64,000 nt of DNA from the NCBI GenBank assembly GCA_040285825.1, contig JAUPSS010000007.1, forward strand, positions 1,528,624 to 1,592,623, given 5' to 3'. The notes beneath the pieces are model-generated. The model searched no databases. It was not told the origin of the DNA and saw only the letters and a list, made by a program, of their open reading frames with translations. A program made the position numbers and the translations under genes. Shown here one piece after another: positions 3,351 through 61,209 of this stretch (position 1 is its first letter; each line of letters opens with the position of its first letter). The stretch is from Eukaryota sp. TZLM1-RC (taxonomy: Eukaryota > Protista > Metamonada: BaSk clade).

Positions 3351-3394
3351 AATAATTTTAAATTTTATTTTTAAATTAATTATCATTATGATTT

Positions 3395-25200: not shown

Positions 25201-28200
25201 GTAATCATGAGTTTGTACTGATCAAGTAACACATAGCCAACATTACTCACACACAATTTCACATAAAGTTTGATCACAAGTTGATCACATCTAGTACATA
25301 AGGACTACATGCAACTCATCTAATCATACCAATGACCATTCAACCAATCAAACCAATGACTACTCAAATGACCATAGCAAGGACTTTAACACCACAATTG
25401 TTATATTAATTGTCCCAAAATGGACTTTAAAGATTTGACCAATGATTGTAATAAACAACCATTGGTCAATATACGAAACTAGGAACTTCATATGAGCCTC
25501 AGTAAATCGTATCAAAAACGATACTCTTACACTTACAGCAATTGTTTTATTAGTTTACAACATTCAATTGTATACTTTTTGATTTTTTTTACTTTTTTTT
25601 ACAAATTAATGTTTAAAAATTAATACACTCAATTAATTCAAATATATACAAAATCAATTGAAAATGTAATCATGAGTTTGTACTGATCAAGTAACACATA
25701 GCCAACATTACTCACACACAATTTCACACAAAGTTTGATCACAAGTTGATCACATCTAGTACATAAGGACTACATGCAACTCATCTAATCATACCAATGA
25801 CCATTCAACCAATCAAACCAATGACTACTCAAATGACCATGGCAAGGACTTTAACACCACAATTGTTATATTGATTGTCCCAAAATGGCTTTAAAGATTT
25901 GACCAATGATTGTAATAAACAACCATTGGTCAATATACGAAACTAGGAACTTCATATGAGCCTCAGTAAATCGTATCAAAACGATACTCTTACACTTACA
26001 GCAATTGTTTTATTAGTTTACAACATTCAATTGTATACTTTTGATTTTTTACTTTTTTACAGTTTAATGTTTAAAAATTAATACACTCAATTATTTCAAA
26101 TATATACAAAATCATTTGAAAATGTAATCATGAGTTTGTACTGATCAAGTAACACATAGCCAACATTACTCACACACAATTTCACACAAAGTTTGATCAC
26201 AAGTTGATCACATCTAGTACATAAGGACTACATGCAACTCATCTAATCATACTAATGACCATTCAACCAATCAAACCAATGACTACTCAAATGACCATAG
26301 CAAGGACTTTAACACCACAATTGTTATATTAATTGTCCCAAAATGGACTTTAAAGATTTGACCAATGATTGTAATAAACAACCATTGGTCAATATACGAA
26401 ACTAGGAACTTCATATGAGCCTCAGTAAATCGTATCAAAAACGATACTCTTACACTTACAGCAATTGTTTTATTAGTTTACAACATTCAATTGTATACTT
26501 TTTGATTTTTTTACTTTTTTTACAAATTAATGTTTAAAAATTAATACACTCAATTAATTCAAATATATACAAAATCATTTGAAAATGTAATCATGAGTTT
26601 GTACTGATCAAGTAACACATAGCCAACATTACTCACACACAATTTCACATAAAGTTTGATCACAAGTTGATCACATCTAGTACATATGGACTACATGCAA
26701 CTCATCTAATCATACCAATGACCATTCAACCAATCAAACCAATGACTACTCAAATGACCATAGCAAGGACTTTAACACCACAATTGTTATATTAATTGTC
26801 CCAAAATGGACTTTAAAGATTTGACCAATGATTGTAATAAACAACCATTGGTCAATATACGAAACTAGGAACTTCATATGAGCCTCAGTAAATCGTATCA
26901 AAACGATACTCTTACACTTACAGCAATTGTTTTATTAGTTTACAACATTCAATTGTATACTTTTTGATTTTTTACTTTTTTACAAATTAATGTTTAAAAA
27001 TTAATACACTCAATTAATTCAAATATATACAAAATCAATTGAAAATGTAATCATGAGTTTGTACTGATCAAGTAACACATAGCCAACATTACTCACACAC
27101 AATTTCACACAAAGTTTGATCACAAGTTGATCACATCTAGTACATAAGGACTACATGCAACTCATCTAATCATACCAATGACCATTCAACCAATCAAACC
27201 AATGACTACTCAAATGACCATGGCAAGGACTTTAACACCACAATTGTTATATTGATTGTCCCAAAATGGCTTTAAAGATTTGACCAATGATTGTAATAAA
27301 CAACCATTGGTCAATATACGAAAACTAGGAACTTCATATGAGCCTCAGTAAATCGTATCAAAACGATACTCTTACACTTACAGCAATTGTTTTATTAGTT
27401 TACAACATTCAATTGTATACTTTTTGATTTTTTTACTTTTTTTACAGTTTAATGTTTAAAAATTAATACACTCAATTATTTCAAATATATACAAAATCAT
27501 TTGAAAATGTAATCATGAGTTTGTACTGATCAAGTAACACATAGCCAACATTACTCACACACAATTTCACACAAAGTTTGATCACAAGTTGATCACATCT
27601 AGTACATAAGGACTACATGCAACTCATCTAATCATACTAATGACCATTCAACCAATCAAACCAATGACTACTCAAATGACCATAGCAAGGACTTTAACAC
27701 CACAATTGTTATATTAATTGTCCCAAAATGGACTTTAAAGATTTGACCAATGATTGTAATAAACAACCATTGGTCAATATACGAAACTAGGAACTTCATA
27801 TGAGCCTCAGTAAATCGTATCAAAACGATACTCTTACACTTACAGCAATTGTTTTATTAGTTTACAACATTCAATTGTATACTTTTTGATTTTTTACTGT
27901 TTTTACAAATTAATGTTTAAAAATTAATACACTCAATTAATTCAAATATATACAAAATCATTTGAAAATGTAATCATGAGTTTGTACTGATCAAGTAACA
28001 CATAGCCAACATTACTCACACACAATTTCACACAAAGTTTGATCACAAGTTGATCACATCTAGTACATAAGGACTACATGCAACTCATCTAATCATACCA
28101 ATGACCATTCAACCAATCAAACCAATGACTACTCAAATGACCATAGCAAGGACTTTAACACCACAATTGTTATATTAATTGTCCCAAAATGGACTTTAAA

Positions 28201-30219
28201 GATTTGACCAATGATTGTAATAAACAACCATTGGTCAATATACGAAACTAGGAACTTCATATGAGCCTCAGTAAATCGTATCAAAAACGATACTCTTACA
28301 CTTACAGCAATTGTTTTATTAGTTTACAACATTCAATTGTATACTTTTGATTTTTTACTTTTTACAATTTAATGTTTAAAAATTAATACACTCAATTAAT
28401 TCAAATATATACAAAATCATTTGAAAATGTAATCATGAGTTTGTACTGATCAAGTAACACATAGCCAACATTACTCACACACAATTTCACACAAAGTTTG
28501 ATCACAAGTTGATCACATCTAGTACATAAGGACTACATGCAACTCATCTAATCATACTAATGACCATTCAACCAATCAAACCAATGACTACTCAAATGAC
28601 CATAGCAAGGACTTTAACACCACAATTGTTATATTAATTGTCCCAAAATGGACTTTAAAGATTTGACCAATGATTGTAATAAACAACCATTGGTCAATAT
28701 ACGAAACTAGAACTTCATATGAGCCTCAGTAAATCGTATCAAAAACGATACTCTTACACTTACAGCAATTGTTTTATTAGTTTACAACATTCAATTGTAT
28801 ACTTTTTGATTTTTTTACTTTTTTTACCAATTAATGTTTAAAAATTTATACACTCAATTAATTCAAATATATACAAAATCATTTGAAAATGTAATCATGA
28901 GTTTGTACTGATCAAGTAACACATAGCCAACATTACTCACACACAATTTCACACAAAGTTTGATCACAAGTTGATCACATCTAGTACATAAGGACTACAT
29001 GCAACTCATCTAATCATACCAATGACCATTCAACCAATCAAACCAATGACTACTCAAATGACCATAGCAAGGACTTTAACACCACAATTGTTATATTAAT
29101 TGTCCCAAAATGGACTTTAAAGATTTGACCAATGATTGTAATAAACAACCATTGGTCAATATACGAAACTAGGAACTTCATATGAGCCTCAGTAAATCGT
29201 ATCAAAAACGATACTCTTACACTTACAGCAATTGTTTTATTAGTTTACAACATTCAATTGTATACTTTTTGATTTTTTTACTTTTTTTACAATTTAATGT
29301 TTAAAAATTAATACACTCAATTAATTCAAATATATACAAAATCAATTGAAAATGTAATCATGAGTTTGTACTGATCAAGTAAAACATAGCCAACATTACT
29401 CACACACAATTTCACACAAAGTTTGATCACAAGTTGATCACATCTAGTGCATAAGGACTACATGCAACTCACCTAATCATACCAATGACCATTCAACCAA
29501 TCATACCAATGACTACTCAAATGACCATAGCACGGACTTTAACACCACAATTGTTATAATAATTGTCCCAAAATGCACTTTAAAGATTTGACCAATGATT
29601 GTAATAAACAACCATTGGTCAATATACGAAACTAGGAACTTCATATGAGCCTCAGTAAATCGTATCAAAAACGATACTCTTACACTTACAGCAATGGTTT
29701 TATTAGTTTGCAACATTCAATTGTATACTTTTTGATTTTTTACTATTTTTACAATTTAATGTTCAAAAATTAATAACTCAATTAATTCAAATATATACAA
29801 AATCAATTGAAAATGTAATCATGAGTTTGTACTGATCAAGTAAAACATAGCCAACATTACTCACACACAATTTCACACAAAGTTTGATCACAAGTTGATC
29901 ACATCTAGTACATAAAGACTACATGCAACTCACCTCATCACCAATGACCATTCAACCAATCAAACCAATGACTACTCAAATGACCATAGCAAGGACTTTA
30001 ACACCACAATTGTTATATTAATTGTCCCAAAATGGACTTTAAAGATTTGACCAACGATTGTAATAAACAACCATTGGTCAATATACGAAACTAGGAACTT
30101 CATATGAGCCTCAGTAAATCGTATCAAAAACGATACTCTTACACTTACAGCAATGGTTTGATTAGTTTGCAGCATTCAATTGTATACTTTTTGATTTTTT
30201 ACTATTTTTACAATTTAAT

Positions 30220-32116
30220 ATTTTTATTTATTTTATGGAAAAAAATCAGACTTTATTTTTGACTCCTTTACCCTTGAATCTTCTTCTGGTGTGAAACAAG
30301 GTGATCCTCTTGGCCCTTGGCTGTTTTGTTTGGCTATTCATAATATTATTAAAATGACACAGCAAGATTTCCCTGATTTGCGTATTGTTGCCTATATGGA
30401 TGACATTTCTATTATTGGTTCTTTTGAAAGCATTTCTAGGGTTTCTGAAGACATTGCGGCGAAATACAAAGAAATTGGTTTAGCTTTGAACCCATCTAAA
30501 TTTCTCTTGATTGGTAGAGAAAAACAATATTTGATGATTGGTGGAGCTCAGATTCCTTTTATCAATTATGACCAACAAGCTTTTAAGTTTCTTGGATGTT
30601 GGCTTGGCAATTTGGATGAAATTTATTCCCAGTTAAACAATTTATTGGAGAAGTTTGACAAGGATCTTAGTTTTATTGCTGAATGTGACATTGAGAAACA
30701 CATCAAATTTTTTTATTTTAAAAATTTGTTATTCTGGAAAATTCACTCATATTTTAAGGTCAACTCCCCTTCGGTATCTCTCAATTTTTGCAGATCTTTT
30801 AACAAACTTCGAGTCAAATTTTTTTTTCTTTATTAGAAGTAAATGAATCTTTAATTCGAAGTCATGTATTTTGTTCAGCAGATTTGGGTGGAATTGGATT
30901 CACCAAATCTTCGATTCTGTGTAAAGCAGCATTTTTGGGAGGTGGTAAAAATTTTGTTTTTGAATTATTCCAAAGGTTCCCTTTTGATGTTCATCTCATC
31001 AATGGTGAATCAAATTTTACTTGAATCAACTGCAATTTGAATTAGAAAATTTGCCTAGTGATATCTGGATTCAGTGTTTTCCTCAAAATGTTCAAGAAAT
31101 TCCCACTCGATCACTTCCAAATTTACGTTTTTGCTTGAAAAAGCTTCAGCACCATCTGGTTAAATTATATGAAGGCTTGGATTATGAAGTAAGACTTGGC
31201 TTGGCCAAAACTAAAAATCCCGCTTTCGGTAATTTTTTTAAAGGATATTCGTGATAGTTCAGCTGCTGCTTTAGTAACTCAAGTGCCCTCTGTTTATGGA
31301 CTTTTGTTAAAAGACAATGAATGGCTTCTAAACATGCGTTTTCGTTGTTTTCTGTGGCCAAACAATTTGCCCAATCATTTAACTTGTAAATGTGGTAAAC
31401 CTCTTTTGTTTACTCATCTTTTTGAACTGTAAACATTTCATTACGTTTAGAAGCAAAGTGCATAATAACGTCAGGGACCAAATTTATGTAATGTGCAAAT
31501 CATATCGTGTAGATTCCTTTTTAGAACCGCTGTTATCAAAATTAATTCTTGATGATCCCAATATTGATAGTACGCGTTACAACAGAGCTTCTATGGGTCT
31601 GACTAGAGGTGATCTAGTTGTTCCTGGTTTAAATGGTAGTTTTACTATTTTGGACGCCATGTCTATTGACCCTTGTAATTCCTCTAACGAACATTTCAAT
31701 AACTCGGATGTAAATAATCCTCTTCTTGCAGGCGAAAAATATAAAATTGCTAAATATGCGAAACCCATTTCCTCGGTTAATGAAAATTCTCATGCCCAAT
31801 ATAATTTATGTCCATTTGTTTTTTCTTTGCTTGGATCTCTAGGTAAGGCTGCTATGGCTTTCCTTGAGGATTTTGTTGTAGTTGTAAAGGAAAGAACTGG
31901 AAGAATTTTCAATCGTGTTTACTGGCAAAACAGGATTGTATTTTCTATTTTTAAGGGAATGGTAACACTAATTTCTGATTCACTATCTTCTTTTGGGAAA
32001 TTTTCTGAATCTTTAGCGATTAATTGTTTTGATGTAGGGGAGGCAGGTTTTGAGGATGTGGAGTTTTAATTGTGTATTTCATATTTGTTGTTGAATAAAA
32101 ATAAATACTGAAAAAA
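30220..32116 (+). mobile_element. 5'-truncated CRE-like retrotransposon lineage C in array (copy 1)
   Basis: KQGDPLGP, YMDD, CKC..HLLNC, VHNNVRD, RGD..DAM; A8 tail; array resumes at aatgtttaaaa. Confidence 0.95.
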
Positions 32117-32579
32117 AATGTTTAAAAATTAATAACTCAATTAATTCAAATATATACAAAATCAATTGAAAATGTAATCATGAGTTTGTACTGATCAAGT
32201 AAAACATAGCCAACATTACTCACACACAATTTCACACAAAGTTTGATCACAAGTTGATCACATCTAGTACATAAAGACTACATGCAACTCACCTCATCAC
32301 CAATGACCATTCAACCAATCAAACCAATGACTACTCAAATGACCATAGCAAGGACTTTAACACCACAATTGTTATATTAATTGTCCCAAAATGGACTTTA
32401 AAGATTTGACCAACGATTGTAATAAACAACCATTGGTCAATATACGAAACTAGGAACTTCATATGAGCCTCAGTAAATCGTATCAAAAACGATACTCTTA
32501 CACTTACAGCAATGGTTTGATTAGTTTGCAGCATTCAATTGTATACTTTTTGATTTTTTTACTATTTTTACAATTTAAT

Positions 32580-34477
32580 ATTTTTATTTATTTTATGGAA
32601 AAAAATCAGACTTTATTTTTGACTCCTTTACCCTTGAATCTTCTTCTGGTGTGAAACAAGGTGATCCTCTTGGCCCTTGGCTGTTTTGTTTGGCTATTCA
32701 TAATATTATTAAAATGACACAGCAAGATTTCCCTGATTTGCGTATTGTTGCCTATATGGATGACATTTCTATTATTGGTTCTTTTGAAAGCATTTCTAGG
32801 GTTTCTGAAGACATTGCGGCGAAATACAAAGAAATTGGTTTAGCTTTGAACCCATCTAAATGTCTCTTGATTGGTAGAGAAAAACAATATTTGATGATTG
32901 GTGGAGCTCAGATTCCTTTTATCAATTATGACCAACAAGCTTTTAAGTTTCTTGGATGTTGGCTTGGCAATTTGGATGAAATTTATTCCCAGTTAAACAA
33001 TTTATTGGAGAAGTTTGACAAGGATCTTAGTTTTATTGCTGAATGTGACATTGAGAAACACATCAAATTTTTTTATTTTAAAAATTTGTTATTCTGGAAA
33101 ATTCACTCATATTTTAAGGTCAACTCCCCCTTCGGTATCTCTCAATTTTTGCAGATCTTTTAACAAACTTCGAGTCAAATTTTTTTTTCTTTATTAGAAG
33201 TAAATGAATCTTTAATTCGAAGTCATGTATTTTGTTCAGCAGATTTGGGTGGAATTGGATTCACCAAATCTTCGATTCTGTGTAAAGCAGCATTTTTGGG
33301 AGGTGGTAAAAATTTTGTTTTTGAATTATTCCAAAGGTTCCCTTTTGATGTTCATCTCATCAATGGTGAATCAAATTTTTACTTGAATCAACTGCAATTT
33401 GAATTAGAAAATTTGCCTAGTGATATCTGGATTCAGTGTTTTCCTCAAAATGTTCAAGAAATTCCCACTCGATCACTTCCAAATTTACGTTTTTGCTTGA
33501 AAAAGCTTCAGCACCATCTGGTTAAATTATATGAAGGCTTGGATTATGAAGTAAGACTTGGCTTGGCCAAAACTAAAAATCCCGCTTTCGGTAATTTTTT
33601 AAAGGATATTCGTGATAGTTCAGCTGCTGCTTTAGTAACTCAAGTGCCCTCTGTTTATGGACTTTTGTTAAAAGACAATGAATGGCTTCTAAACATGCGT
33701 TTTCGTTGTTTTCTGTGGCCAAACAATTTGCCCAATCATTTAACTTGTAAATGTGGTAAACCTCTTTTGTTTACTCATCTTTTGAACTGTAAACATTTCA
33801 TTACGTTTAGAAGCAAAGTGCATAATAACGTCAGGGACCAAATTTATGTAATGTGCAAATCATATCGTGTAGATTCCTTTTTAGAACCGCTGTTATCAAA
33901 ATTAATTCTTGATGATCCCAATATTGATAGTACGCGTTACAACAGAGCTTCTATGGGTCTGACTAGAGGTGATCTAGTTGTTCCTGGTTTAAATGGTAGT
34001 TTTACTATTTTGGACGCCATGTCTATTGACCCTTGTAATTCCTCTAACGAACATTTCAATAACTCGGATGTAAATAATCCTCTTCTTGCAGGCGAAAAAT
34101 ATAAAATTGCTAAATATGCGAAACCCATTTCCTCGGTTAATGAAAATTCTCATGCCCAATATAATTTATGTCCATTTGTTTTTTCTTTGCTTGGATCTCT
34201 AGGTAAGGCTGCTATGGCTTTCCTTGAGGATTTTGTTGTAGTTGTAAAGGAAAGAACTGGAAGAATTTTCAATCGTGTTTACTGGCAAAACAGGATTGTA
34301 TTTTTCTATTTTTAAGGGAATGGTAACACTAATTTCTGATTCACTATCTTCTTTTGGGAAATTTTCTGAATCTTTAGCGATTAATTGTTTTGATGTAGGG
34401 GAGGCAGGTTTTGAGGATGTGGAGTTTTAATTGTGTATTTCATATTTGTTGTTGAATAAAAATAAATACTGAAAAAA
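32580..34477 (+). mobile_element. Lineage C in array (copy 2, tandem duplicate of copy 1)
   Basis: Same 5' truncation point and junctions as copy 1; period ~2360 bp. Confidence 0.95.
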
Positions 34478-35406
34478 AATGTTTAAAAATTAATAAATTC
34501 AATTAATTCAAATATATACAAAATCAATTGAAAATGTAATCATGAGTTTGTATTATCAAGTAACACATAGCCAACATTACTCACACACAATTTCACACAA
34601 AGTTTGATCACAAGTTGATCACATCTAGTACATAAAGACTACATGCAACTCACCTCATCACCAATGACCATTCAACCAATCAAACCAATGACTACTCAAA
34701 TGACCATAGCAAGGACTTTAACACCACAATTGTTATATTAATTGTCCCAAAATGGACTTTAAAGATTTGACCAACGATTGTAATAAACAACCATTGGTCA
34801 ATATACGAAACTAGGAACTTCATATGAACCTCAGTAAATCGTATCAAAAACGATACTCTTACACTTACAGCAATGGTTTTATTAGTTTGCAACATTCAAT
34901 TGTATACTTTTTGATTTTTTTACTATTTTTACAATTTAATGTTCAAAAATTAATAACTCAATTAATTCAAATATATACAAAATCAATTGAAAATGTAATC
35001 ATGAGCTTGTACTGATCAAGTAAAACATAGCCAACATTACTCACACACAATTTCACACAAAGTTTGATCACAAGTTGATCACATCTAGTACATAAAGACT
35101 ACATGCAACTCACCTCATCACCAATGACCATTCAACCAATCAAACCAATGACTACTCAAATGACCATAGCAAGGACTTTAACACCACAATTGTTATATTA
35201 ATTGTCCCAAAATGGACTTTAAAGATTTCACCAACGATTGTAATAAACAACCATTGGTCAATATACGAAACTAGGAACTTCATATGAGCCTCAGTAAATC
35301 GTATCAAAAACGATACTCTTACACTTACAGCAATTGTTTCATTAGTTTACAACATTCAATTGTATACTTTTTGATTTTTTATTTTTTTTACAATTTAATG
35401 TTTAAA

Positions 35407-37381
35407 TATTTATTTATTTATTCTACGAAGAATCAAATAGAACAAACTAAAACACATAAGAAACTAAATTCTCCACGCCAACTCTTGATGAATCCTTATA
35501 AAGTTTAGACATCATTAAACTCAAGTACTTGGGAACACTTCTGTACAAAGCGAAAATGATACGATTTTCCATAAATTCTCTGCAAAATTCTTACCACTTG
35601 AACGACATAAATTACCAAAATCATTGATGAAATTCATGGCGGATTGTCCAATGTTGCCAAAAATCGAAAAGGCAAAAGGAACAAACGAAAACTTCGAATA
35701 AAGGTTCTTATTTAAATCATTTAATATCTCAGTATATTTATCTCTCTTACGATCTTCAGCCTTGTTTAAATGGCCATTAGTACTAAGTAAAACATCATCG
35801 CGATAAACCAAAGCAAAGGGATCAACTGTAGTGAAATCAACAACAACTTGAGAGGAATCCACAAATGGAGCAATTAAATCACCTCGACGGGAATTAAAAA
35901 GATTATCATCACTATAATGCTTCAACAAAGGTTCTACTTTGCAACTAAAATTGTAACACTTGAACATCTCATATGTCACATCACGAACGGCATTATGAAG
36001 AACTGACCTATATTGGAGAAATTTCTTACAGCTCACAATATGACGAAAATTGGCAGTAGGTTTTTTGTTACAAATACAATAAGAATTGTCCAAAAGACCA
36101 CTTGGATACATCCCTAATCTCAACCGCATGTTTTGTTTCCAAGCTTCATTTGTTAAGTGAAGACCAAATGGCCTTGGTTGCTGAGATATTAAACTAGTAC
36201 AGTTCTGAATGTCTGCTAAAAAGGCAGCAAAGACGGGATTATTAATCTTAATCACACTAAGTCGTTTAGAAAAATCCAGGTCTTCAAAACCAATAAGAAC
36301 AGACTTCTGTAATTTCACAACAGCAAGATGAAGGTTGGTGAAAGATCTCGAAGGCACAGCAGGTAAACTTGAAGGAAAACTCCTATTCCAAATATCAACA
36401 GGTAGTTCTTGCACCATTTTTTTCAAGAGAAATTAATAAAGGATGTGATTCATTTAAAGGAATATGATCAAAAACGAAGTTTCCATTCAAAAAGAAAATT
36501 TTTCATACCACCAATAAAAGCACTTTTGCATAAATACTCTGCTTTTGAAAAACCAACTCCACCAAATTTAGGACTAAAAAAATGCATGATAAGGAATTTT
36601 TGATGGACAAACTTCTACTAAATTTCCCAAGAAATTTGTTCTCAAAGTATTGAATTGACGTGCAAAATCATGAGAAATTGTGGGAGATAAAGAACGAAGA
36701 AGGTGATTAATTTTTGATCCAAAACACACATTTAGGACCGAAAACGCTAAATGTTTGTCAATTTCTAGATCTTCAATAGCCAAAAGTTGCTCTTCGATTT
36801 TTTTCCAAAATACCTGACAAAATCGATTTAACTTTTTCACTATTTCCAAAATAAGATCCAAGAAACCGAATAGCATCTTCCTCGTACTCAACGTATTTGA
36901 TAAAAGTTTCATTAAATGCCACCTCCGCATGCTGATTACCAATAATGAAACACTTGGGCAATTTAATGTCTAACCCTATTTGTTTGGCCAGAAAAACAAA
37001 ATGTTGTAAACCGTGTTGTAAAAAGAGACAAAGGGCCAATAAGTGATAAATCATCTGCATAAGCACATATATGAATGTCAGGAAAATCCGACTTAAATTT
37101 TACCAAAACTAATTGCAGTGCTAAGCAAAAGAAAAATGGACCCAATGGATCCCCTTGTTTGACCCCTCTTGACGAAACAATATTCTCAGAATGAAAAATT
37201 AAGTTAGAGGGTGATCCATACATCAATTTAAAATACGGCAAAAGTGGAGGATAGTGTAGTTCAAGTTCTTGCAAAATACTGGAGCGAAAAACGGAGTTGA
37301 AAGCATTTTTAAAATCAATGTTTAATAAATAATTTTCGCCTTTTTGATTGAAAAGTAAATCTGTACACAACGCAGCACATG
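35407..37381 (-). mobile_element. 5'-truncated lineage B in array, 13-bp TSD
   Basis: RT and RLE fragments; tttaatgtttaaa at 35394-35406 and 37382-37394; (taaa)n-like tail. Confidence 0.95.
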
Positions 37382-40300
37382 TTTAATGTTTAAAAATTAA
37401 TAAACTCAATTAATTCAAATATATACAAAATCAATTGAAAATGTAATCATGAGTTTGTATTATCAAGTAACACATGGCCAACATTACTCACACACAATTT
37501 CACACAAAGTTTGATCACAAGTTGATCACATCTAACATAAAGACTACATGCAACTCACCTCATCACCAATGACCATTCAACCAATCAAACCAATGACTAC
37601 TCAAATGACCATAGCAAGGACTTTAACACCACAATTGTTATATTAATTGTCCCAAAATGGACTTTAAAGATTTGACCAATGATTGTAATAAACAACCATT
37701 GGTCAATATACGAAACTAGAAACTTCATATGAGCCTCAGTAAATCGTATCAAAAACGATACTCTTACACTTACAGCAATGGTTTGATTAGTTTGCAACAT
37801 TCAATTGTATACTTTTTGATTTTTTACTATTTTTACAATTTAATGTTTAAAAATTAATAAATTCAATTAATTCAAATATATACAAAATCAATTGAAAATG
37901 TAATCATGAGTTTGTATTATCAAGTAACACATAGCCAACATTACTCACACACAATTTCACACAAAGTTTGATCACAAGTTGATCACATCTAGTACATAAG
38001 GACTACATGCAACTCACCTCATCACCAATGACCATTCAACCAATCAAACCAATGACTACTCAAATGACCATAGCAAGGACTTTAACACCACAATTGTTAT
38101 ATTAATTGTCCCAAAATGGACTTTAAAGATTTGACCAACGATTGTAATAAACAACCATTGGTCAATATACGAAACTAGGAACTTCATATGAGCCTCAGTA
38201 AATCGTATCAAAAACGATACTGTTACACTTACAGCAATGGTTTTATTAGTTTGCAACATTCAATTGTATACTTTTTGATTTTTTTACTATTTTTACAATT
38301 TAATGTTCAAAAATTAATAACTCAATTAATTCAAATATATACAAAATCAATTGAAAATGTAATCATGAGTTTGTACTGATCAAGTAAAACATAGCCAACA
38401 TTACTCACACACAATTTCACACAAAGTTTGATCACAAGTTAATCACATCAAGTACATAAGGACTACATGCAACTGACCTCATCACCAATAACCATTCAAC
38501 CAATCAAACCAATGACTACTCAAATGACCATAGCAAGGACTTTAACACCACAATTGTTATATTAATTGTCCCAAAATGGACTTTAAAGATTTGACCAACG
38601 ATTGTAATAAACAACCATTGGTCAATATACGAAACTAGGAACTTCATATGAGCCTCAGTAAATCGTATCAAAACGATACTGTTACACTTACAGCAATGGT
38701 TTTATTAGTTTGCAACATTCAATTGTATACTTTTGATTTTTACTATTTTTACAATTTAATGTTCAAAATTAATAACTCAATTAATTCAAATATATACAAA
38801 ATCAATTGAAAATGTAATCATGAGTTTGTACTGATCAAGTAAACATAGCCAACATTACTCACACAATTTCACACAAAGTTTGATCACAAGTTGATCACAT
38901 CAAGTACATAAGGACTACATGCAACTCACCTCATCACCAATGACCATTCAACCAATCAAACCAATGACTACTCAAATGACCATAGCAAGGACTTTAACAC
39001 CACAATTGTTATATTAATTGTCCCAAAATGGACTTTAAAGATTTGACCAACGATTGTAATAAACAACCATTGGTCAATATACGAAACTAGGAACTTCATA
39101 TGAGCCTCAGTAAATCGTATCAAAAACGATACTGTTACACTTACAGCAATGGTTTTATTAGTTTGCAACATTCAATTGTATACTTTTTGATTTTTTTACT
39201 ATTTTTACAATTTAATGTTCAAAAATTAATAACTCAATTAATTCAAATATATACAAAATCAATTGAAAATGTAATCATGAGTTTGTACTGATCAAGTAAA
39301 ACATAGCCAACATTACTCACACACAATTTCACACAAAGTTTGATCACAAGTTGATCACATCAAGTACATAAGGACTACATGCAACTCACCTCATCACCAA
39401 TGACCATTCAACCAATCAAACCAATGACTACTCAAATGACCATAGCAAGGACTTTAACACCACAATTGTTATATTAATTGTCCCAAAATGGACTTTAAAG
39501 ATTTGACCAACGATTGTAATAAACAACCATTGGTCAATATACGAAACTAGGAACTTCATATGAGCCTCAGTAAATCGTATCAAAAACGATACTGTTACAC
39601 TTACAGCAATGATTTTATTAGTTTGCAACATTCAATTGTATACTTTTTGATTTTTTTTACTATTTTTACAATTTAATGTTCAAAAATTAATAACTCAATT
39701 AATTCAAATATATACAAAATCAATTGAAAATGTAATCATGAGTTTGTACTGATCAAGTAAAACATAGCCAACATTACTCACACACAACTTCACACAAAGT
39801 TTGATCACAAGTTGATCACATTAAGTACATAAGGACTACATGCAACTCACCAAATCACACCAATGACCATTCAACCAATCAAACCAATGACTACTCAAAT
39901 GACCATAGCACGGACTTTAACACCACAATTGTTGTATTAATTGTCCCAAAATGGACTTTAAAGATTTGACCAACGATTGTAATAAACAACCATTGGTCAA
40001 TATACGAAACTAGGAACTTCATATGAGCCTCAGTAAATCGTATCAAAAACGATACTCTTACATATACAGCAATGGTGTTATTAGTTTGCAACATTCAATT
40101 GTATACTTTTTGATTTTTTACTATTTTTACAATTTAATGTTTAAAAATTAATAACTCAATTAATTCAAATATATACAAAATCAATTGAAAATGTAATCAT
40201 GAGTTTGTACTGATCAAGTAACACATAGCCAACATTACTCACACACAATTTCACACAAAGTTTGATCACAAGTTGATCACATCTAGTACATAAAGACTAC

Positions 40301-43300
40301 ATGCAACTCACCTCATCACCAATGACCATTCAACCAATCAAACCAATGACTACTCAAATGACCATAGCAAGGACTTTAACACCACAATTGTTATATTAAT
40401 TGTCCCACAATGGACTTTAAAGATTTGACCAACGATTGTAATAAACAACCATTGGTCAATATACGAAACTAGGAACTTCATATGAGCCTCAGTAAATCGT
40501 ATCAAAAACGATACTGTTACACTTACAGCAATGGTTTTATTAGTTTGCAACATTCAATTGTATACTTTTTGATTTTTTTTACTATTTTTACAATTTAATG
40601 TTCAAAAATTAATAACTCAATTAATTCAAATATATACAAAATCAATTGAAAATGTAATCATGAGTTTGTACTGATCAAGTAACACATAGCCAACATTACT
40701 CACACACATTTTCACACAAAGTTTGATCACAAGTTGATCACATTAAGTACATAAGGACTACATGCAACTCACCAAATCACACCAATGACCATTCAACCAA
40801 TCAAACCAATGACTACTCAAATGACCATAGCACGGACTTTAACACCACAATTGTTGTATTAATTGTCCCAAAATGGACTTTAAAGATTTGACCAACGATT
40901 GTAATAAACAACCATTGGTCAATATACGAAACTAGGAACTTCATATGAGCCTCAGTAAATCGTATCAAAAACGATACTCTTACACTTACAGCAATGGTGT
41001 TATTAGTTTGCAACATTCAATTGTATACTTTTTGATTTTTTACTATTTTTACAATTTAATGTTTAAAAATTAATAACTCAATTAATTCAAATATATACAA
41101 AATCAATTGAAAATGTAATCATGAGTTTGTACTGATCAAGTAACACATAGCCAACATTACTCACACACAATTTCACACAAAGTTTGATCACAAGTTGATC
41201 ACATCTAGTACATAAGGACTACATGCAACTCACCTCATCACCAATGACCATTCAACCAATCAAACCAATGACTACTCAAATGACCATAGCAAGGACTTCA
41301 ACACCACAATTGTTGTATTAATTGTCCCAAAATGGACTTTAAAGATTTGACCAACGATTGTAATAAACAACCATTGGTCAATATACGAAACTAGGAACTT
41401 CATATGAGCCTCAGTAAATCGTATCAAAAACGATACTGTTACACTTACAGCAATGGTTTTATTAGTTTGCAACATTCAATTGTATACTTTTTGATTTTTT
41501 TTACTATTTTTACAATTTAATGTTCAAAAATTAATAACTCAATTAATTCAAATATATACAAAATCAATTGAAAATGTAATCATGAGTTTGTACTGATCAA
41601 GTAACACATAGCCAACATTACTCACACACAATTTCACACAAAGTTTGATCACAAGTTGATCACATCTAGTACATAAAGACTACATGCAACTCACCTCATC
41701 ACCAATGACCATTCAACCAATCAAACCAATGACTACTCAAATGACCATAGCAAGGACTTTAACACCACAATTGTTATAATAATTGTCCCAAAATGGACTT
41801 TAAAGATTTGACCAATGATTGTAATAAACAACCATTGGTCAATATACGAAACTAGGAACTTCATATGAGCCTCAGTAAATCGTATCAAAAACGATACTGT
41901 TACACTTACAGCAATGGTTTTATTAGTTTGCAACATTCAATTGTATACTTTTGATTTTTACTATTTTTACAATTTAATGTTCAAAAATTAATAACTCAAT
42001 TAATTCAAATATATACAAAATCAATTGAAAATGTAATCATGAGTTTGTACTGATCAAGTAAAACATAGCCAACATTACTCACACACAATTTCACACAAAG
42101 TTTGATCACAAGTTGATCACATTAAGTACATAAGGACTACATGCAACTCACCAAATCACACCAATGACCATTCAACCAATCAAACCAATGACTACTCAAA
42201 TGACCATAGCACGGACTTTAACACCACAATTGTTGTATTAATTGTCCCAAAATGGACTTTAAAGATTTGACCAACGATTGTAATAAACAACCATTGGTCA
42301 ATATACGAAACTAGGAACTTCATATGAGCCTCAGTAAATCGTATCAAAAACGATACTCTTACACTTACAGCAATGGTGTTATTAGTTTGCAACATTCAAT
42401 TGTATACTTTTTGATTTTTTACTATTTTTACAATTTAATGTTTAAAAATTAATAACTCAATTAATTCAAATATATACAAAATCAATTGAAAATGTAATCA
42501 TGAGTTTGTACTGATCAAGTAACACATAGCCAACATTACTCACACAATTTCACACAAAGTTTGATCACAAGTTGATCACATCTAGTACATAAAGACTACA
42601 TGCAACTCACCTCATCACCAATGACCATTCAACCAATCAAACCAATGACTACTCAAATGACCATAGCAAGGACTTTAACACCACAATTGTTATATTAATT
42701 GTCCCAAAATGGACTATAAAGATTTGACCAATGATTGTAATAAACAACCATTGGTCAATATACGAAACTAGGAACTTCATATGAGCCTCAGTAAATCGTA
42801 TCAAAAACGATACTCTTACACTTACAGCAATGGTTTGATTAGTTTGCAACATTCAATTGTATACTTTTTGATTTTTTACTATTTTTGAATCTATAACAAT
42901 TTTATTGTTAATATCTGCAACAACTGAACCAATGTCTTTAAAATTTTGCAAAAATTGCCTGAGTGTTCTTCCCATGTGTTTAATCTGCAATGGAAGAACG
43001 GCAATTGTTTATTTTGAATTAAAAAATTTGATTTGGAAACCGATAATGTCTCAAATGAGTATTTTGGCTGGACCAGACCATTCCTTTAGTGCTGGGCACA
43101 TCTTCTTTTACTTATCCCGAATTTTCGAGCCTCAATAATTAAACCTCAAAAAAGTCAATTTCATTTTGTTATAGTGGGAGAGGGAGAGGTAATCGTTCCA
43201 GAAATAGATTGTAGGGCAGAGGTTGTGCTTTTTGTGGACGTGAACGAAGTGTATTTTTTGAAGAGTTAATCCCACAAATCCCCACTTGATGTCTCTCTCA

Positions 43301-43608
43301 ACGCTGTTTCTCTCATCTGCAACACTGCTTCTGAGACTGAAACACCCTCGATCTCGGTTTACATCTTCAACATCCTTTATTTATGATCCTCTAGTTCCTC
43401 CTCACACTTATGAACTATCTAATCATCCCAATATTCCAGAACTTGTTTCATACGATAAAACACTGCCAAATGGCTTCTATTCAGTTTATTTCTACCGAAA
43501 TGAACATTTAGTCATAAAACCTTCATGTCCTGTACATCATGCATTCAACTACAATTTCTTCACTGTCGAAAAATCGGAACTTTTAAACGAAGTAAAGCTT
43601 CGTAGGTG

Positions 43609-44030
43609 TACCAATGACCATTCAACCAATCATACCAATGACTACTCAAATGACCATAGCACAGACTTTAACACCACAATTGTTATAATAATTGTCCCAA
43701 AATGGACTTTAAAGATTTGACCAACGATTGTAATAAACAACCATTGGTCAGTATACGAAACTAGGAACTTCATATGAGCCTCAGTAATTCGTATCAAAAA
43801 CGATACTCTTACACTTACAGCAATTGTTTTATTAGTTTACAACATTCAATTGTATACATTTTGATTTTTTATTTTTTTACAATTTAATGTTTAAAAATTA
43901 ATAAACTCAATTAATTCAAATATATACAAAATCATTTGAAAATGTAATCATGAGTATGTACTGATCAAGTAACACATAGCCAACACTACTCACACACAAT
44001 TTCACACAAAGTTTGATCACAAGTTGATCA
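43609..44030 (+). repeat. Isolated partial 460-bp unit
   Basis: Runs from taccaatgacc to aagttgatca. Confidence 0.95.
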
Positions 44031-44732
44031 TTATTAACATTAAGCATCAATCCAAAATCAGTCTACTCGACAAAACAACAATAGTAGGACGGTTTGCCTT
44101 AATTAATTTCACTCACATTATTTTGGAGTTGCTATACAAGTAAAATGCGAGAGTTACCCGTCATTTAGTTGATGGGGTTTGTAGTAGAAAAAGTATTAGT
44201 CAAGGGTTGTTGTTGAGTTGTAAAATGTGACTGTTCCAGGAATACAAATTCTATTTTGGAAAACAAAATTTCCAACGATCAAGCCTTAATTAATGTCACC
44301 ATCTTTATAAACTAATTTATTGCTGAACTAATATCCAAATAACTAATTCTCTTTACTATAACAGTATGAAAGCGAAAAATAAGTAAAAAAAGTTCAATTT
44401 ACCTGTCCCAATTATTGTCGATTCATCCTCAAATTCAACCACGCATAGATTAATATTTTAAATTAATTAAAGTGACATTAATTTTCCACTGACATTAATT
44501 TGGCACTAATTTCACACGTTACTTTCGATGATTACTCTCGCTATTCTGGGTTAAGATAAGCAGATATATTAACCTGTTGGCCAGAGAATTGAACCAAAGT
44601 ATAAAGACAAAAGGAACTCATCCGACAGGTTTAGTGTCTGTCTGCAGCTAAATGTGTGCCCGCATCTCTAACCAGATTTTCATCAGAAAAATAATACTAT
44701 AGTTGGAAGAGAAGGGCTTTGGCTGCTGTTGG

Positions 44733-44927
44733 ATGATTAGATGAGTTGCATGTAGTCCTTATGTACTAGATGTGATCAACTTGTGATCAAACTTTGTGTG
44801 AAATTGTGTGTGAGTAGTGTTGGCTATGTGTTACTTGATCAGTACAAACTCATGATTACATTTTCAATTGATTTTGTATATATTTGAATTAATTGAGTTT
44901 ATTAATTTTTAAACATTAAATTGTAAA
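44733..44927 (-). repeat. Inverted partial unit (left flank of element X)
   Basis: Reverse complement of the unit; continues at 50331. Confidence 0.95.
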
Positions 44928-47900
44928 TTTTTTTTTCTCACTAACTTTCAACGTCCTCCTTTTTCTTAACTTGACGTCCTATTGTCGGTTCGATTGAATT
45001 CCTCCAGTCTTAATGTCAGACACTCTCAGTGATACTGACTGGACTGCAAAAAGTACCGAACGTGATCTTGACAAACCAACCTCCTCAACCACCAATCGTT
45101 CTCATTCTCCCCACCTGTCACTCCATGCTGGAAAATCATTGGAAAAAAATTTAAATGAAAATTTTTCTAAACCCCGCCGCAAATGTAGTAAATGTCGAAA
45201 ATCCGGACATAACATTGCAACTTGTCCGCTTATTCAAAAGGAAAAACTGAATGCTCGTGCTGCAACTGCTGATTTAAATTTTTCGTTAACACACAATCCT
45301 GAAAATGAATTTTTAAGTGAGATTCCCGATAACACTCCTATCAAAGAAGATCAAAAGGATGAAAAAAATGTGTTTTTTGTCGAAAGCTTGTTGCTGTCAA
45401 TGATTCTGGTCGACCTTTACTTTTTTGTGATTCTTGTGTTGCTGCTGATCAGCTACGTTGTCCCATTCGTGTTCCTGCTCAGCTTAGTCCGTTGGTTTCG
45501 ATACCTTTTGCTGTTGTTCTTCGTGCCTTTACTGAAAATCTCCGTAAAGGATTATGGGATGTTACGCCTATTTGGAAATTTTTTCTGAAAAAAGATAAAA
45601 AACTTTTATCGAAAAAATCAAATTTTAAAAAAAATGTTTTTTCGAAAGAAAAATTAGTGAGAAAATTAGCTTTAAAAGGACGTTTTGGATCTGCAAAACA
45701 ATGTTTATTTTCTTCTGATTTAGCTGAATGTAATGAAAGCACATTGTTCCAATTGAATCATCTTCATCCAGTTGCTTTAAATAAGCCTGGAGGTGGTGTC
45801 AGACCTATTGCTGTTGGTGAGTCCATAACGAGATTATTAGCAATTATTTCCTTTAAAAGAGTCAAGTCATCCGCAATTAATTTTTTTCGTCCTTATCAGT
45901 TTGCTATCGGAATTCCTGATGGCACAACATGTGCTGCGTTGTGTACAGATTTACTTTTCAATCAAAAAGGCGAAAATTATTTATTAAACATTGATTTTAA
46001 AAATGCTTTCAACTCCGTTTTTCGCTCCAGTATTTTGCAAGAACTTGAACTACACTATCCTCCACTTTTACCGTATTTTAAATTGATGTATGGATCACCC
46101 TCTAACTTAATTTTTCATTCTGAGAATATTGTTTCGTCAAGAGGGGTCAAACAAGGGGATCCATTGGGTCCATTTTTCTTTTGCTTAGCACTGCAATCAG
46201 TTTTGGTAAAATTTAAGTCGGATTTTCCTGACATTCATATATGTGCTTATGCAGATGATTTATCACTTATTGGCCCTTTGTCTCTTTTACAACACGGTTT
46301 ACAACATTTTGTTTTTCTGGCCAAACAAATAGGGTTAGACATTAAATTGCCCAAGTGTTTCATTATTGGTAATCAGCATGCGGAGGTGGCATTCAATGAA
46401 ACTTTTATCAAATATGTTGATTACGAGGAAGATGCTATTCGGTTTCTTGGATCTTATTTTGGAAATAGTGAAAAAGTTAAATCGATTTTGTCAGGTATTT
46501 TGGAAAAAATCGAAGAGCAACTTTTGGCTATTGAAGATCTAGAAATTGACAAACATTTAGCGTTTTCGGTCCTAAATGTGTGTTTTGGATCAAAAATTAA
46601 TCACCTTCTTCGTTCTTTATCTCCCACAATTTCTCATGATTTTGCACGTCAATTCAATACTTTGAGAACAAATTTCTTAGGAAATTTAGTAGAAGTTTGT
46701 CCATCAAAAATTCCTTATCATGCATTTTTTAGTCCTAAATTTGGTGGAGTTGGTTTTTCAAAAGCAGAGTATTTATGCAAAAGTGCTTTTATTGGTGGTA
46801 TGAAAAATTTTCTTTTTGAATGGAAACTTCGTTTTGATCATATTCCTTTAAATGAATCACATCCTTTATTAATTTCTCTTGAAAAAATGGTGCAAGAACT
46901 ACCTGTTGATATTTGGAATAGGAGTTTTCCTTCAAGTTTACCTGCGGTGCCTTCGAGATCTTTCACCAACCTTCATCTTGCTGTTGTGAAATTACAGAAG
47001 TCTGTTCTTATTGGTTTTGAAGACCTGGATTTTTCCAAACGACTTAGTGTGACTAAGATTAATAATCCCGTCTTTGCTGCCTTTTTAGCAGACATTCAGA
47101 ACTGTACTAGTTTAATATCTCAGCAACCAAGGCCATTTGGTCTTCACTTAACAAATGAAGCTTGGAAACAAAACATGCGGTTGAGATTAGGGATGTATCC
47201 AAGTGGTCTTTTGGACAATTCTTATTGTATTTGTAACAAAAAACCTACTGCCAATTTTCGTCATATTGTGAGCTGTAAGAAATTTCTCCAATATAGGTCA
47301 GTTCTTCATAATGCCGTTCGTGATGTGACATATGAGATGTTCAAGTGTTACAATTTTAGTTGCAAAGTAGAACCTTTGTTGAAGCATTATAGTGATGATA
47401 ATCTTTTTAATTCACGTCGAGGTGATTTAATTGCTCCATTTGTGGATTCCTCTCAAGTTGTTGTTGATTTCACTACAGTTGATCCCTTTGCTTTGGTTTA
47501 TCGCGATGATGTTTTACTTAGTAGTAATGGCCATTTAAACAAGGCTGAAGATCGTAAGAGAGATAAATATACTGAGATATTAAATGATTTAAATAAGAAC
47601 CTTTATTCGAAGTTTTCGTTTGTTCCTTTTGCCTTTTCGATTTTTGGCAACATTGGACAATCCGCCATGAATTTCATCAATGATTTTGGTAATTTATGTC
47701 GTTCAAGTGGTAAGAATTTTGCAGAGAATTTATGGAAAAATCGTATCATTTTCGCTTTGTACAGAAGTGTTCCCAAGTACTTGAGTTTAATGATGTCTAA
47801 ACTTTATAAGGATTCATCAAGAGTTGGCGTGGAGAATTTAGTTTCTTATGTGTTTTAGTTTGTTTTGTTTTTATTTGATTCTTTATATAAATAAAATCTT

Positions 47901-50330
47901 CATCCAGAAGAAAATTTTCATTGTACTAAACCAGATTCACTTGATTATTGGCTACAAAATCCTGTCAATGCTTCTGAGGTATTGAAACTGATTCAGCAAA
48001 TGCCTACTGGAAAAGCTTCTGGGCCATCTTTGTTGAATTTTGACATGATCAAATCAGCTGTCGGACAGTGTCCTGAAATTGCTGATGATCTTGTTCTTTT
48101 TTTCAACAATCTTCTTACGTTAAAAATTAAAGTCCCTTTTGAGATGACCAGTGCTCGCTTAATTGCCCTTAAAAAAAGTCAATCCAAAATCCGTCCAATT
48201 GCAATTGGAGAATCGTTTTCAAGAATTCTTGCGTCTCTTGTTTTCAATAGAATTGGAAAAAAAGCCAAGGAATTTTTCAGTCCGTTTCAATTTGGAATCA
48301 AGACAATTGATGGTGCTTCTTCTGCTGCTCTTTCGTCTGATGTGTTTTTTAATTCTAGTGATTCTAATTACATCTTCAATTTAGATTTTAAGAATGCTTT
48401 CAATTCTGTATCTCGTTCTTCCATTTTACCTTTGCTGCAAAAGCATTTTCCTGAAGTTGAGCCTTTTTTCTATTCATTTTATGGAAAATCATCCACATTG
48501 GTCTATGAAAATTTTGACCTGCTTTCGTCTTCAGGTGTTAAACAAGGTGATCCACTTGGTCCTTTTTTCTTTTGTCTGGCAATTCATCCATTAATGTGCG
48601 AATTGAAAGAAAAATTCCCAGAAATAGATATTGTAGCATATATGGATGACATTTCTGTAATTGCTCCTATTACAATTCTGAAACAAATAGCAACTTTTAT
48701 TCAACAGCGTTATGAAGATATTGGTCTCTCATTGAATATCTCCAAATGTTTGATTATTGGCCATGAACCAATTGATTTCTTCATTAATGATGTCAATGTC
48801 CCCTTTATAAATTATGATCAGTCTGGTTTTCGTTTTTTGGGTTGTTATCTCGGAAATATTGATGAAGTCAAAAGCCAACTTTCGACTCTGTTGACTCAAT
48901 TTGGAAATGAATTAGAATCAATAGAAAATTTAAATATTGAGAAACATTTGAAATTCTTTTTCCTCAAAATCTGTTATTCTGGAAAATTTACTCATATTTT
49001 GAGATCAACATCACCATCAATTTCCTTGGAGTTCTGTCGCATTTTTAATGAACAAAGAACTAATTTTTTAGCAAAATTATTGGAAATTGATGCATCTCAG
49101 TTACGAAGCCACCTTTTTTGTGGTACAAATTTTGGTGGTGTTGATTTTCATAAGTCAAGCTACCTTTGTAAAGCTGCCTTTATTGGAGGTGGAAAGAATT
49201 TTGTTTATGAATTTGTGAATCGTTTTCCTGAAAAAATTCATCTCATTGAAAATTGTGGCAGCTCCTATCTTATTTCTTTGCAACAGGAAATTGAAACTCT
49301 TTCACCCAATATTTGGGCTAAATGTTTCCCCTCTGATATTGTGGAACTTCCTTCAAGAAGCTTGCTCTCCTTACCATTGACTTTTGCAAAATTGCAGAAA
49401 AAAATTTTGAAAGTTTTAGAAAACTTGGATTATATTGTACGTCTTAGCTTGGCTAAGGAAAAAAATCCCGTTTTTGCAAACTTTTTGATTGATCTTGAAG
49501 ACAGTTGCTCAAGTTGCTTAATCTCCCAAATTCCCAACATTTACGGCCTTCTACTTAATGATCACCAATGGACCACTGCAATGAGATTGAGATGTTTTCT
49601 ATGGCCTTGTTCATTGCCAAATGATTTAATTTGTCGCTGCAAGAGTGTTGTTACGCTTTCCCATATCTTAAACTGTAAGTATTTTATAACTTATCGCTCA
49701 CTTGTTCATGACTCAGTTCGTGATCAATTATATGCCATGTGCAAAAGTTTCAATATAGAGGCATTTATCGAGCCACTAGTACGTAAGCTGTCTTCAGATC
49801 AAACTGATGATTCCTTTGGTAAAAGAAGGGCAGATTTAGTAGCTCCAGGGATCGATGGTGTTCTCAATGTTGTAGACGTTGTCTCAGTGGATGTTTGCAA
49901 AAATTCTGCTGCTCGTTTAGTGTATTCCGCTGACTCGCCGTTATCTAACGCCGAAAAAAAGAAGATAAAAAAATATGAAGAACCTTTGGCACAGTTAGGT
50001 AGAGTGGAACATGTGAAATATCAGTTTGTGCCGTTTGCAATTTCTCTTTTTGGCAATATTGGACCTTCAGGCTTGCACTTTTTGGAAAATTTTAAAAAAA
50101 GTATTACTGAATAGGTCTGGTAAAACAATGAACTCCACTTTCTGGTTAAATAGAATTGTTTTTGCATTTTCAAGTCTATTCCAACAATGATTTCAAAGGC
50201 ACTTTTAGCTATTGGTGTAGAATATGAACGTAATGCTGTGAGTAGGTTCAGTAATAGTGACGCTTGTTTGGAGGATATTGAATTCTAGATGGTTATTTTT
50301 ATCTCAATAAATATTCCAGTTTTTTAAAAA
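44928..50330 (+). mobile_element. Full-length CRE-like element X (44928-45771 + 47908-50330) interrupted by nested lineage B; 10-bp TSD
   Basis: ATG 45013; CSKCRKSGHNIATC knuckle; CxxC..CxxC after an A7 frameshift; LHP|EE junction; GKASGPS, RPIAIGE, YMDD, VHDSVRD, RAD..DV; TSD aaattgtaaa at 44918-44927 and 50331-50340. Confidence 0.92.
45772..47895 (+). mobile_element. 5'-truncated lineage B nested in element X, 12-bp TSD
   Basis: atcttcatccag at 45760-45771 and 47896-47907; intact VALNKPGGG...YADD...VSYVF frame. Confidence 0.93.
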
Positions 50331-50431
50331 AAATTGTAAAAAAATAAAAAATCAAAAAGTATACAATTGAATGTTGTAAACTAATAAAACAATTGCTGTA
50401 AGTGTAAGAGTATCGTTTTGATACGATTTAC
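50331..50431 (-). repeat. Continuation of inverted unit (right flank of X)
   Basis: aaattgtaaa...gtatacaattgaatgttg...gatacgatttac. Confidence 0.92.
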
Positions 50432-53400: not shown

Positions 53401-54368
53401 CCCAGGCATTCATCTAAAGTGTTCATAATGTTTAAATAATTTTCACTATTAGAATTTAGACCAGTCTTTGCCCACTGATCAGCAATATCATTCCTGTTAT
53501 TATTGTTGTGAGCTTTTACCCAATTGAAAATAAATTTTGAATTAAATTTTTGAAGTAATTTCTTAATGAAATTAACTTTTTTCTTAATGTAAGAATCTGA
53601 TGCATTAAATTCACCAGATAGCCATTTTAGCACATTTTGACTATCAATAAAAAATTCAACCTTCTTTACTTTGTAATTTAGCTTTAATAAAGATAAAAGA
53701 GCTAATATTACAGCTGACAATTCGGCAGAATTAATTGTACATTTATCAAGTACTTGGCCAAATTGGTTACAAATTAAACTCTCGTCACAATATAATTGAC
53801 AAGAACAACCTGCCAATCGTTGAATTTTTTCATTATCTTTAATAGTGGTTGAAGAACCATCCGTGTAGATTTGAACACGAGTAACTTCATTTGAGACATG
53901 AAGTAAATTGTTAGAATTATTTTGATCAGAAGGAGAACGAGAAGGTTGAGGAACAGAAGAATTTTTCGGTAATGATATTTTTGAAGATGTTGATGAACGT
54001 GAATTGAAGAAAGTGGAGGCATTGGTACAACTACTAGAAGAGTTTGACTGTGAAATTGGAGGTTGGGGAGAAAGGGAAGAGAAGGAAGTAGATGAGGATT
54101 GATTGTGATTAGGGGTGGTGACAAGTGACACATCAGATATCTTCTCCAAAGGGGGGTCAAATATACGTGTGTCAACTGTAGAAGAGAGTGGAAGTGACAT
54201 TCTTCTTCGCCGACCCCTCATTGGAACAGGAGGAAGATTTAAGGCAGGCTTCGAGCTCGAACAAGACATGCTACGGGTTCTTCTTGTCGTGTTCATAAGA
54301 AGAAATTACAAAGCTCTGGGAAAGCCTCAGAAACAGAAGGTAGTATAACAATGGGAAGGAGAAAAAAA
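50432..54368 (-). mobile_element. Full-length RLE non-LTR retrotransposon F: Ser-rich - RNase H - 2x C2H2 - RT - Zn knuckle - RLE
   Basis: ORF 54296-51150 (YTDGS, NSAEL, IDSQ, WVKAH..NDIADQWAK; RPIAISE, QGDPISP, YLDD) then 51088-50480 (CPLC..HSFQC, RHD, RVDG..FDVTI, KY) after frameshifts. Confidence 0.93.
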
Positions 54369-58304: not shown

Positions 58305-58627
58305 AAACCATCTGTAAATGTATTTTGATTGACCAAAAAACTGACTAATCTCAGCTTGGGATTTGTTCAAGTAGAATTAATTATTATTAGAATTATGTGT
58401 AAAGCGCACTGACAAGAGTATAGAAGCTTGAAGCATGAAGTTGTGAAGCTTGTAAATGAGATTGTTCATCAGAACCGATATCGTTGAGATGATCCTGAGT
58501 TGATATCATCATTTTCCATCCAAAAGTCCTAATTGTGAGGCATTCGTGTGGTTGAAAAGTTGTAGGGGAGGGGAACAATTTGGTGGTTGGGGAATTTGAG
58601 AAAAGAAAAATGCACTCCATAACCCAG

Positions 58628-58750
58628 TTCTATTGCTATAGAATATGAACGAAATGCTGTCAGTAGGTTTGTAATAGTAACACTTGTTTGGAGGATATTC
58701 AATTATAGATGGAATGGTTTTCCAATAAAATCCAGTTCCTTAAAAAAAAG
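58628..58750 (+). mobile_element. Decayed 3' tail fragment of lineage X
   Basis: tagaatatgaacg..tgctgt..tgtttggaggatatt matches 50210-50330. Confidence 0.8.
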
Positions 58751-58814
58751 TTAAAAAAAGAAAAGTTTAAAAAGAAAAATAAATTAAAATAAATAAATGA
58801 ATTAAATTTTATTA

Positions 58815-61027: not shown

Positions 61028-61209
61028 AATGAATTAAAGAAAAAGTTGAAAAGTTATTCATCATACATTTTGCCTTCACAGAAGAAAATACAAAAAAATT
61101 CCTTATCAAAGTAAAATTTTCTGCAAAACTGTTTTCTACATCAAAAATATTCCAATTTCTCGACATTTTGATTTCTTTGTTTCAAATCATTTACTAATGC
61201 CAAAAACGA

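Follow-up and report, generated by a model that had tools for sequence, protein, structure and literature searches.

Insertions of three R2-like retrotransposon families within about 20 bp of a tandem repeat in a metamonad protist: a possible relaxed hot zone

Can retrotransposons that home to no fixed sequence be drawn to a single short segment within a tandem repeat? The question is raised by a 64,000-nucleotide stretch of DNA (the window) from the metamonad Eukaryota sp. TZLM1-RC (assembly GCA_040285825.1, contig JAUPSS010000007.1, positions 1,528,624 to 1,592,623, locus tags P9112_), in which a tandem array of a roughly 460-bp unit carries insertions of three element families, here called C, B and X2, that are retrotransposons of the non-LTR type (lacking long terminal repeats) with a restriction-like endonuclease (RLE). 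All three insertions lie in unit positions 64-85. An earlier reading of the window made from its letters alone, the sequence-only reading, had proposed that an undescribed host array acts as a shared landing pad on which three lineages converge at one site of about 20 bp. The answer that we favour, with a probability of about 0.5, is that unit 64-85, which adjoins phased T-tracts, is a regional hot zone of a relaxed kind and no homing site.

Unit positions are numbered on a reference unit taken from window 29684-30144 (461 bp), and dispersed copies were drawn from 11 further loci of the same assembly (241 kb in all, cited by L numbers), which were fetched via the proteins of these families. 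Read from the sequence, C interrupts the unit at 30217-30219 on its 5' side (unit 75-77); on its 3' side the unit restarts at position 75, at 32116/32117, and the target-site duplication (TSD) is at most 3 bp. Its two copies, C1 and C2, agree in length and in both junctions and are 99.7% identical over 1894 bp, so that C and one unit were duplicated together as a 2.36-kb block, and C counts as one event. The interval that the sequence-only reading had called lineage X is a single full-length X2 element of 3.27 kb with a B copy nested inside it, since an uninterrupted X2 is present at L010 9917-13185 (98.6-99.1% identity); its 5' part is 98.6% identical to L010 9917-10760, and its tail of T6 then A8 is the same in the copies at L002, L010 and L011. 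The nested B is accordingly a hit on X2 and no hit on the unit. The uninterrupted L010 copy also excludes X as two elements joined tail to head, whether by sequential insertion or by a template jump of the reverse transcriptase (RT). The independent hits on the unit are three: C, B and X2. The earlier claim of three lineages at one site of about 20 bp thus stood as three families in unit 64-85, with X resolved into X2 plus a nested B and the C pair reduced to one event; the coordinates, orientations and TSDs given for them were correct when re-read from the sequence.

On the plus strand, the nicks fall after unit 71-74 for X2 and after 84 for B, both as first-strand nicks, and after 77 for C as the second-strand nick; on the minus strand they fall at 64/65 (X2), 71/72 (B) and 74-77 (C). 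The centres of the staggered cuts are at about 69 for X2, 76 for B and 78 for C, a spread of ~10 bp with both orientations used. In the part of the unit that is richest in A+T, three phased T-tracts (unit 46-67) lead directly into the zone. The right break of the array, at 42886, had been placed beside this segment as well, and it does follow unit 67, two bases from the position of the X2 5' junction in an inverted unit; it is probably tied to the rearrangement history of X2 and is then no independent event. The unique stretches past the break (42887-43609, 723 bp, and 44031-44728) gave no match to the analysed elements or to the 11 loci.

Two by-products of these insertions can be seen in the window. 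The 2.36-kb higher-order repeat (30218-34477, two copies) is a retrotransposon amplified along with its array. The nested B prolongs the reading frame of the X2 5' part (45013-47858), with the consequence that the public annotation holds a chimeric 939-aa gene, P9112_011080 (P0001). The features are collected in Table 1.

Table 1. Array blocks, insertions and duplications in the window (window coordinates; RT, reverse transcriptase; ORF, open reading frame; TRF, Tandem Repeats Finder)
Feature	Position	Strand	Description
Left array block	22294-30222 (bounded by C1 from 30218)	rRNA sense = minus strand	~17 units; TRF period 463, 17.2 copies
C1	30218-32116	(+), antisense to rRNA	1.9-kb RLE element of family C with the 3' half of RT followed by CCHC/RLE; RVT_1
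Lone unit separating C1 and C2	32117-32582 (C2 from 32580)	(-)	found by BLAST
C2	32580-34477	(+)	duplicate of C1, same junctions
B TSD	left 35394-35406, right 37382-37394		13 bp, unit 72-84; read from sequence
B	35407-37381	(-), rRNA sense	5'-truncated B-family RLE element; TAAA-repeat 3' tail; RVT_1
Right array block	37382-42886	(-)	12 units; stops after unit position 67, unique DNA beyond
Inverted unit fragment	44729-44927	(+)	unit 261 down to 65; final 10 bp = left X2 TSD copy
X (X2-family)	44928-50330	(+), in inverted unit, hence rRNA sense	10-bp TSD 44918-44927/50331-50340, unit 65-74
X2 5' part	44928-45771	(+)	oligo-T then CTC at start; one zinc knuckle; protein P0001
B copy nested in X2	45772-47895	(+)	own 12-bp duplication of X2 sequence, 45760-45771 and 47896-47907
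X2 3' part	47896-50330	(+)	RT, CCHC, RLE; T6-then-A8 tail; RVT_1; 99.1% identical to L010
Inverted unit	50331-50432	(+)	unit running from 74 to 1 and on from 461 to 430; initial 10 bp = right X2 TSD copy
F	50433-54368 (5' limit provisional)	(-)	RNase H, RT, then 202-aa C-terminal ORF

The nature of the unit bears on how these insertions are to be read. Tandem Repeats Finder and BLAST with the reference unit placed unit copies in the blocks and the lone unit of Table 1 and at 34478-35413, and BLAST added unit fragments at 43610-44030 and in the two inverted pieces. No Rfam family matched the unit at its gathering score. With relaxed thresholds, the top match was the 3' end of LSU_rRNA_eukarya on the minus strand (model positions 3327-3401, high posterior probability), with E-values of 4e-4 and 9e-3 in two adjacent units. 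One public Logan contig of the same sample matches the unit as far as its position 13 (window 29696) and then continues for 255 nt in different sequence, which we take to be the genuine 28S gene, judging by the conserved 28S end and by the Rfam consensus. On the strength of the Rfam match and of this contig leaving the unit at position 13, the minus strand of the unit consists of the last ~73 nt of 28S rRNA (positions 13-1 and 461-402 of the plus strand) and, downstream of them, ~388 nt of spacer. What the sequence-only reading had called an undescribed host array is accordingly an amplified 28S 3' end with its spacer, and the insertion zone is spacer-derived, lying 317-337 nt beyond the copy of the 28S end. 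A spliced-leader or other small-RNA gene was rejected as the identity of the unit, with nothing at Rfam gathering scores and the 3' end of LSU rRNA as the best weak match. The array has two sequence subtypes, 22294-29700 and 29700-42886, which differ around the T-tracts and the hot zone; the window holds 36 copies of the zone, 31 of them intact.

The assignment of the elements to the RLE type, already made in the sequence-only reading, was borne out. Pfam found RVT_1 in X2 with an E-value of 6e-24, in C with 2e-11, and with 9e-21 in the open reading frame (ORF) that runs over the 5' part of X2 into the nested B; the three families have 35-50% mutual amino-acid identity. Behind the RT, a CCHC motif precedes columns of E, D and K, and all of these positions are invariant across an alignment of 30 relatives. 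An AlphaFold model of the C-terminal 300 residues (predicted local distance difference test score, pLDDT, 76) was compared with PDB by Foldseek; seven matches reached E below 0.001, every one of them to an R2 protein, with values from 2e-5 to 7e-4. The RT region matches R2 structures by sequence; a PDB search by sequence alone with the C-terminal endonuclease domain returned no match. By sequence and predicted fold, C, B and X2 are three families of one RLE non-LTR retrotransposon group. The full-length X2 protein (1046 aa, RT from residue 342) has RVT_1 only in Pfam, which detected in it neither an apurinic-like endonuclease N-terminal to the RT nor a Myb domain or finger array. One CX2CX4HX4C zinc knuckle ahead of the RT in X2 (zf-CCHC_2, E 0.1) is the only N-terminal DNA-binding candidate seen. 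Among the matches listed, the nearest proteins from outside are unnamed metagenome ORFs at 24-29% identity, and a Protein Atlas look-up of X2 gave unnamed RT clusters only.

If the unit were a homing site, copies elsewhere should share its flanks. Counting hits on the unit, 10 distinct 3' flanks of B, 14 of C and 7 of X2 were extracted from the window and the 11 loci. Flanks of the dispersed copies resemble neither the unit nor one another, and the readable dispersed TSDs (12 bp for B, 13 bp for C and 7-9 bp for X2) are likewise unrelated; for these reasons, none of the three families is site-specific. The 11 loci contain no array, only one solo fragment and one look-alike: isolated unit pieces lie at L011 16683-16901 (92%, unit 43-260, intact through the zone) and at L007 5310-5580 (68%, unit 36-301), and they may be old relics of spacer DNA. 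With dispersed copies of all three families at unrelated targets and 11 loci without an array, the shared landing pad of the sequence-only reading had to be given up, while its caveats proved sound, namely that there are only three independent events, that element F sits elsewhere in the unit and that TSDs outside the array are unrelated, making specificity relaxed. The density of RLE fragments in the window is much the same inside and outside the array, with at least nine of them outside; given this and the lack of an array in the 11 loci, enrichment of these elements in arrays is not shown.

Several other observations concern the dispersed copies. The 1.9-kb C form, which is without the N-terminal half of the RT, seems to spread as a subfamily and not to be a random truncation, because a dispersed C copy at L009 18326-20206 begins at the same 5' point as do C1 and C2; it presumably uses the proteins of other copies. 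At L011 4543-14740, X2-family copies stand in tandem with a period of ~4.1 kb, and since two of them share an identical 3' flank, they arose by local duplication and not by repeated insertion. RLE copies of several families lie head to tail or nested at 57249-62096 and 1305-5195 of the window, the whole of which is a transposon island.

How surprising is it, then, that three such families meet in one zone? Our measure of chance was that three nicks fall within 9-20 bp of the 461-bp unit, and it was taken post hoc, with n = 3 and one array. A uniform null over 461 bp gives P 0.002-0.006. Weighting for A+T content had a divided outcome: P is 0.002-0.009 under a family-informed null, in which B is limited to A+T-rich positions, C is mildly weighted and X2 is uniform, and rises to 0.02-0.06 when only the ~120 positions with a 15-bp A+T content of at least 80% are eligible. 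At dispersed targets the A+T content averages 0.87 in B, 0.75 in C and 0.71 in X2, where the background value is 0.66, which amounts to a strong bias in B only. The clustering itself is real and probably above chance, though it comes from three events only. As the comparison is post hoc with n = 3, the P values suggest this and do not settle it. Several points count against a hot zone: the higher P of the strictly A+T-rich null, the fact that the only three independent events were singled out afterwards, the stretch at unit 95-115, which is equally A+T-rich and without an insertion and fits neither a hot zone nor chance, and the fall of all three insertions in the right-hand array subtype.

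The reading that unit 64-85 is a relaxed hot zone would run as follows. Three R2-like RLE families would each have integrated once into unit 64-85 by target-primed reverse transcription, at a zone offered in dozens of neutral unit copies, in both orientations, to proteins without evident sequence-reading domains. The cause would lie in how accessible the DNA is or in its shape, for instance in a nucleosome-free linker that the T-tracts hold in place, and not in sequence recognition, and an accessible or easily deformed stretch would account for a zone that does not depend on the family.

The most serious competitor is coincidence, by which elements with a general liking for A+T struck a 16-kb neutral array three times and landed close together by chance, with no hot zone at all. 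It is a real possibility, if well short of an even chance. Coincidence draws on the strong A+T bias of B, on the P of 0.02-0.06 when only A+T-rich positions are eligible and on a pattern that was noticed after the fact among more than 11,000 notes on this genome; it is also helped by the window being a transposon island whose RLE fragments extend beyond the array, and by the break at unit 67 being no independent event. It is hurt by X2 and C, which are scarcely A+T-biased elsewhere and for which the fairer null is the one with P 0.002-0.009, and by the other A+T-rich stretches of the unit (95-115 and 330-335), which are untouched in all 36 copies.

A second alternative is true targeting, in which unit 64-85 would be a genuine homing site like those of R2, CRE or Utopia, reached through weak inherited sequence recognition or through tethering by a spacer-bound host factor such as a polymerase I terminator or replication-fork barrier protein. 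Most RLE clades do target multicopy genes specifically, some of them weakly, the strength of specificity varying between families (Kojima and Jurka 2015, PMC4640811). The closest analogue is YURE, a group of weakly specific NeSL/Utopia relatives that occasionally insert into a satellite derived from the U2 gene (Kojima and Jurka 2015, PMC4640811): these too are RLE elements of relaxed specificity found now and then in a satellite derived from a multicopy RNA gene, a likeness that implies no clade kinship, whereas here the host is a metamonad, the satellite comes from the 28S end and its spacer, and the zone is common to three families. The HERO clade consists of mostly non-specific RLE elements (PMC4640811) and resembles our families in lacking strict target specificity, a likeness in behaviour only.

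R2 itself is alike in having a single ORF with RT followed by CCHC and the restriction-like endonuclease, in the C-terminal fold, which matches solved R2 proteins, in the RT region, which matches by sequence, and in inserting with staggered nicks into rDNA-derived sequence. R2 homes, however, to one 28S nucleotide in one orientation via N-terminal zinc fingers and a Myb domain, whereas here one knuckle and no Myb domain or finger array was found, both orientations are used, the nicks spread over unit 64-85 and most copies lie elsewhere in the genome. CRE/SLACS/CZAR and NeSL-1 likewise live as RLE elements in tandem arrays of a small unit, but they are strictly site-specific and sit in spliced-leader arrays, and the unit here is no spliced-leader gene. 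As for the traits of CRE, NeSL and Utopia, C, B and X2 have neither a target flank common to most copies nor a functional small-RNA gene as target. In another metamonad, Giardia, the RLE elements GilM, GilT and Genie 1 are said to be stacked head to tail and to be associated with repeats or rDNA-proximal regions; no Giardia protein appeared by name among the matches listed (120) in the protein search.

True targeting would fit the derivation of the array from rDNA, the classic RLE target, the centring of three cuts within ~10 bp and a CAA-A/T-T-like nick context, judged by eye, in 3 or 4 of 6 X2 targets, yet we consider it quite unlikely, given the many dispersed copies of all three families at unrelated sequences, the variable orientation (C opposite to B and X2), nick positions up to 13 bp apart, the failure to find a multi-finger or Myb domain and the lack of an array in the 11 loci reached via these very proteins.

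A bolder form of the favoured hot-zone reading holds that each spacer unit carries a real, family-independent hot spot of retrotransposition, arising from chromatin phasing by the T-tracts or from a bound terminator or fork-barrier factor. We think this doubtful. Were it true, otherwise non-specific RLE elements would be funnelled into ~20 bp of harmless DNA, a safe-harbour insertion achieved through host architecture, without specificity encoded by the element. A real hot zone of the relaxed kind would mean that elements without sequence-specific DNA-binding domains still reach a near-constant place in dispensable, multicopy, rDNA-derived DNA, and it could mark a stage on the way to homing as strict as that of R2, CRE or Utopia. 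The setting is a deep-branching protist lineage whose mobile elements have so far gone undescribed; the host genome paper never mentions retrotransposons. At present, the finding amounts to a pattern of three events, in an array that had been recognised before.

A different picture is given by element F, which adjoins the inverted unit at the right-hand end of the features in Table 1. Its 3' end abuts unit 430-433, inside a hairpin derived from 28S and no more than ~30 nt from the end of the part that comes from 28S, and the same type of junction is present in two public contigs; on that account, F looks like a truly site-specific family, judged by its junctions. The position of F also contradicts the earlier suggestion that insertions spare the structured core of the unit.

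Public sequence data gave a wider view of the unit. A census of Logan contigs on one unit placed junctions at ~13, 28, ~260, ~403, ~433 and ~457 and none at 64-85, where the method is blind; since it missed the window's own three junctions as well, finding none among the variable T-tracts does not show that there are none. A metagenome scan with a 28-nt anchor from the unit returned no match. Pieces of the unit are present too in organism B (public run X4), which is another sample from the same study, with a lower word share (0.37) and a few differences.

Two minor features of the array remain. A second recurrent breakpoint lies at unit 257-261: it is seen in the window at 43610 and 44728/44729, the two ends of a 1.1-kb inverted block, at the edge of the solo fragment at L011 16683, and as loose ends (window 29480) in three or more public contigs. 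A 45-bp tandem repeat of 3.9 copies with 93% matches lies at 20343-20518, a short way to the left of where the array begins.

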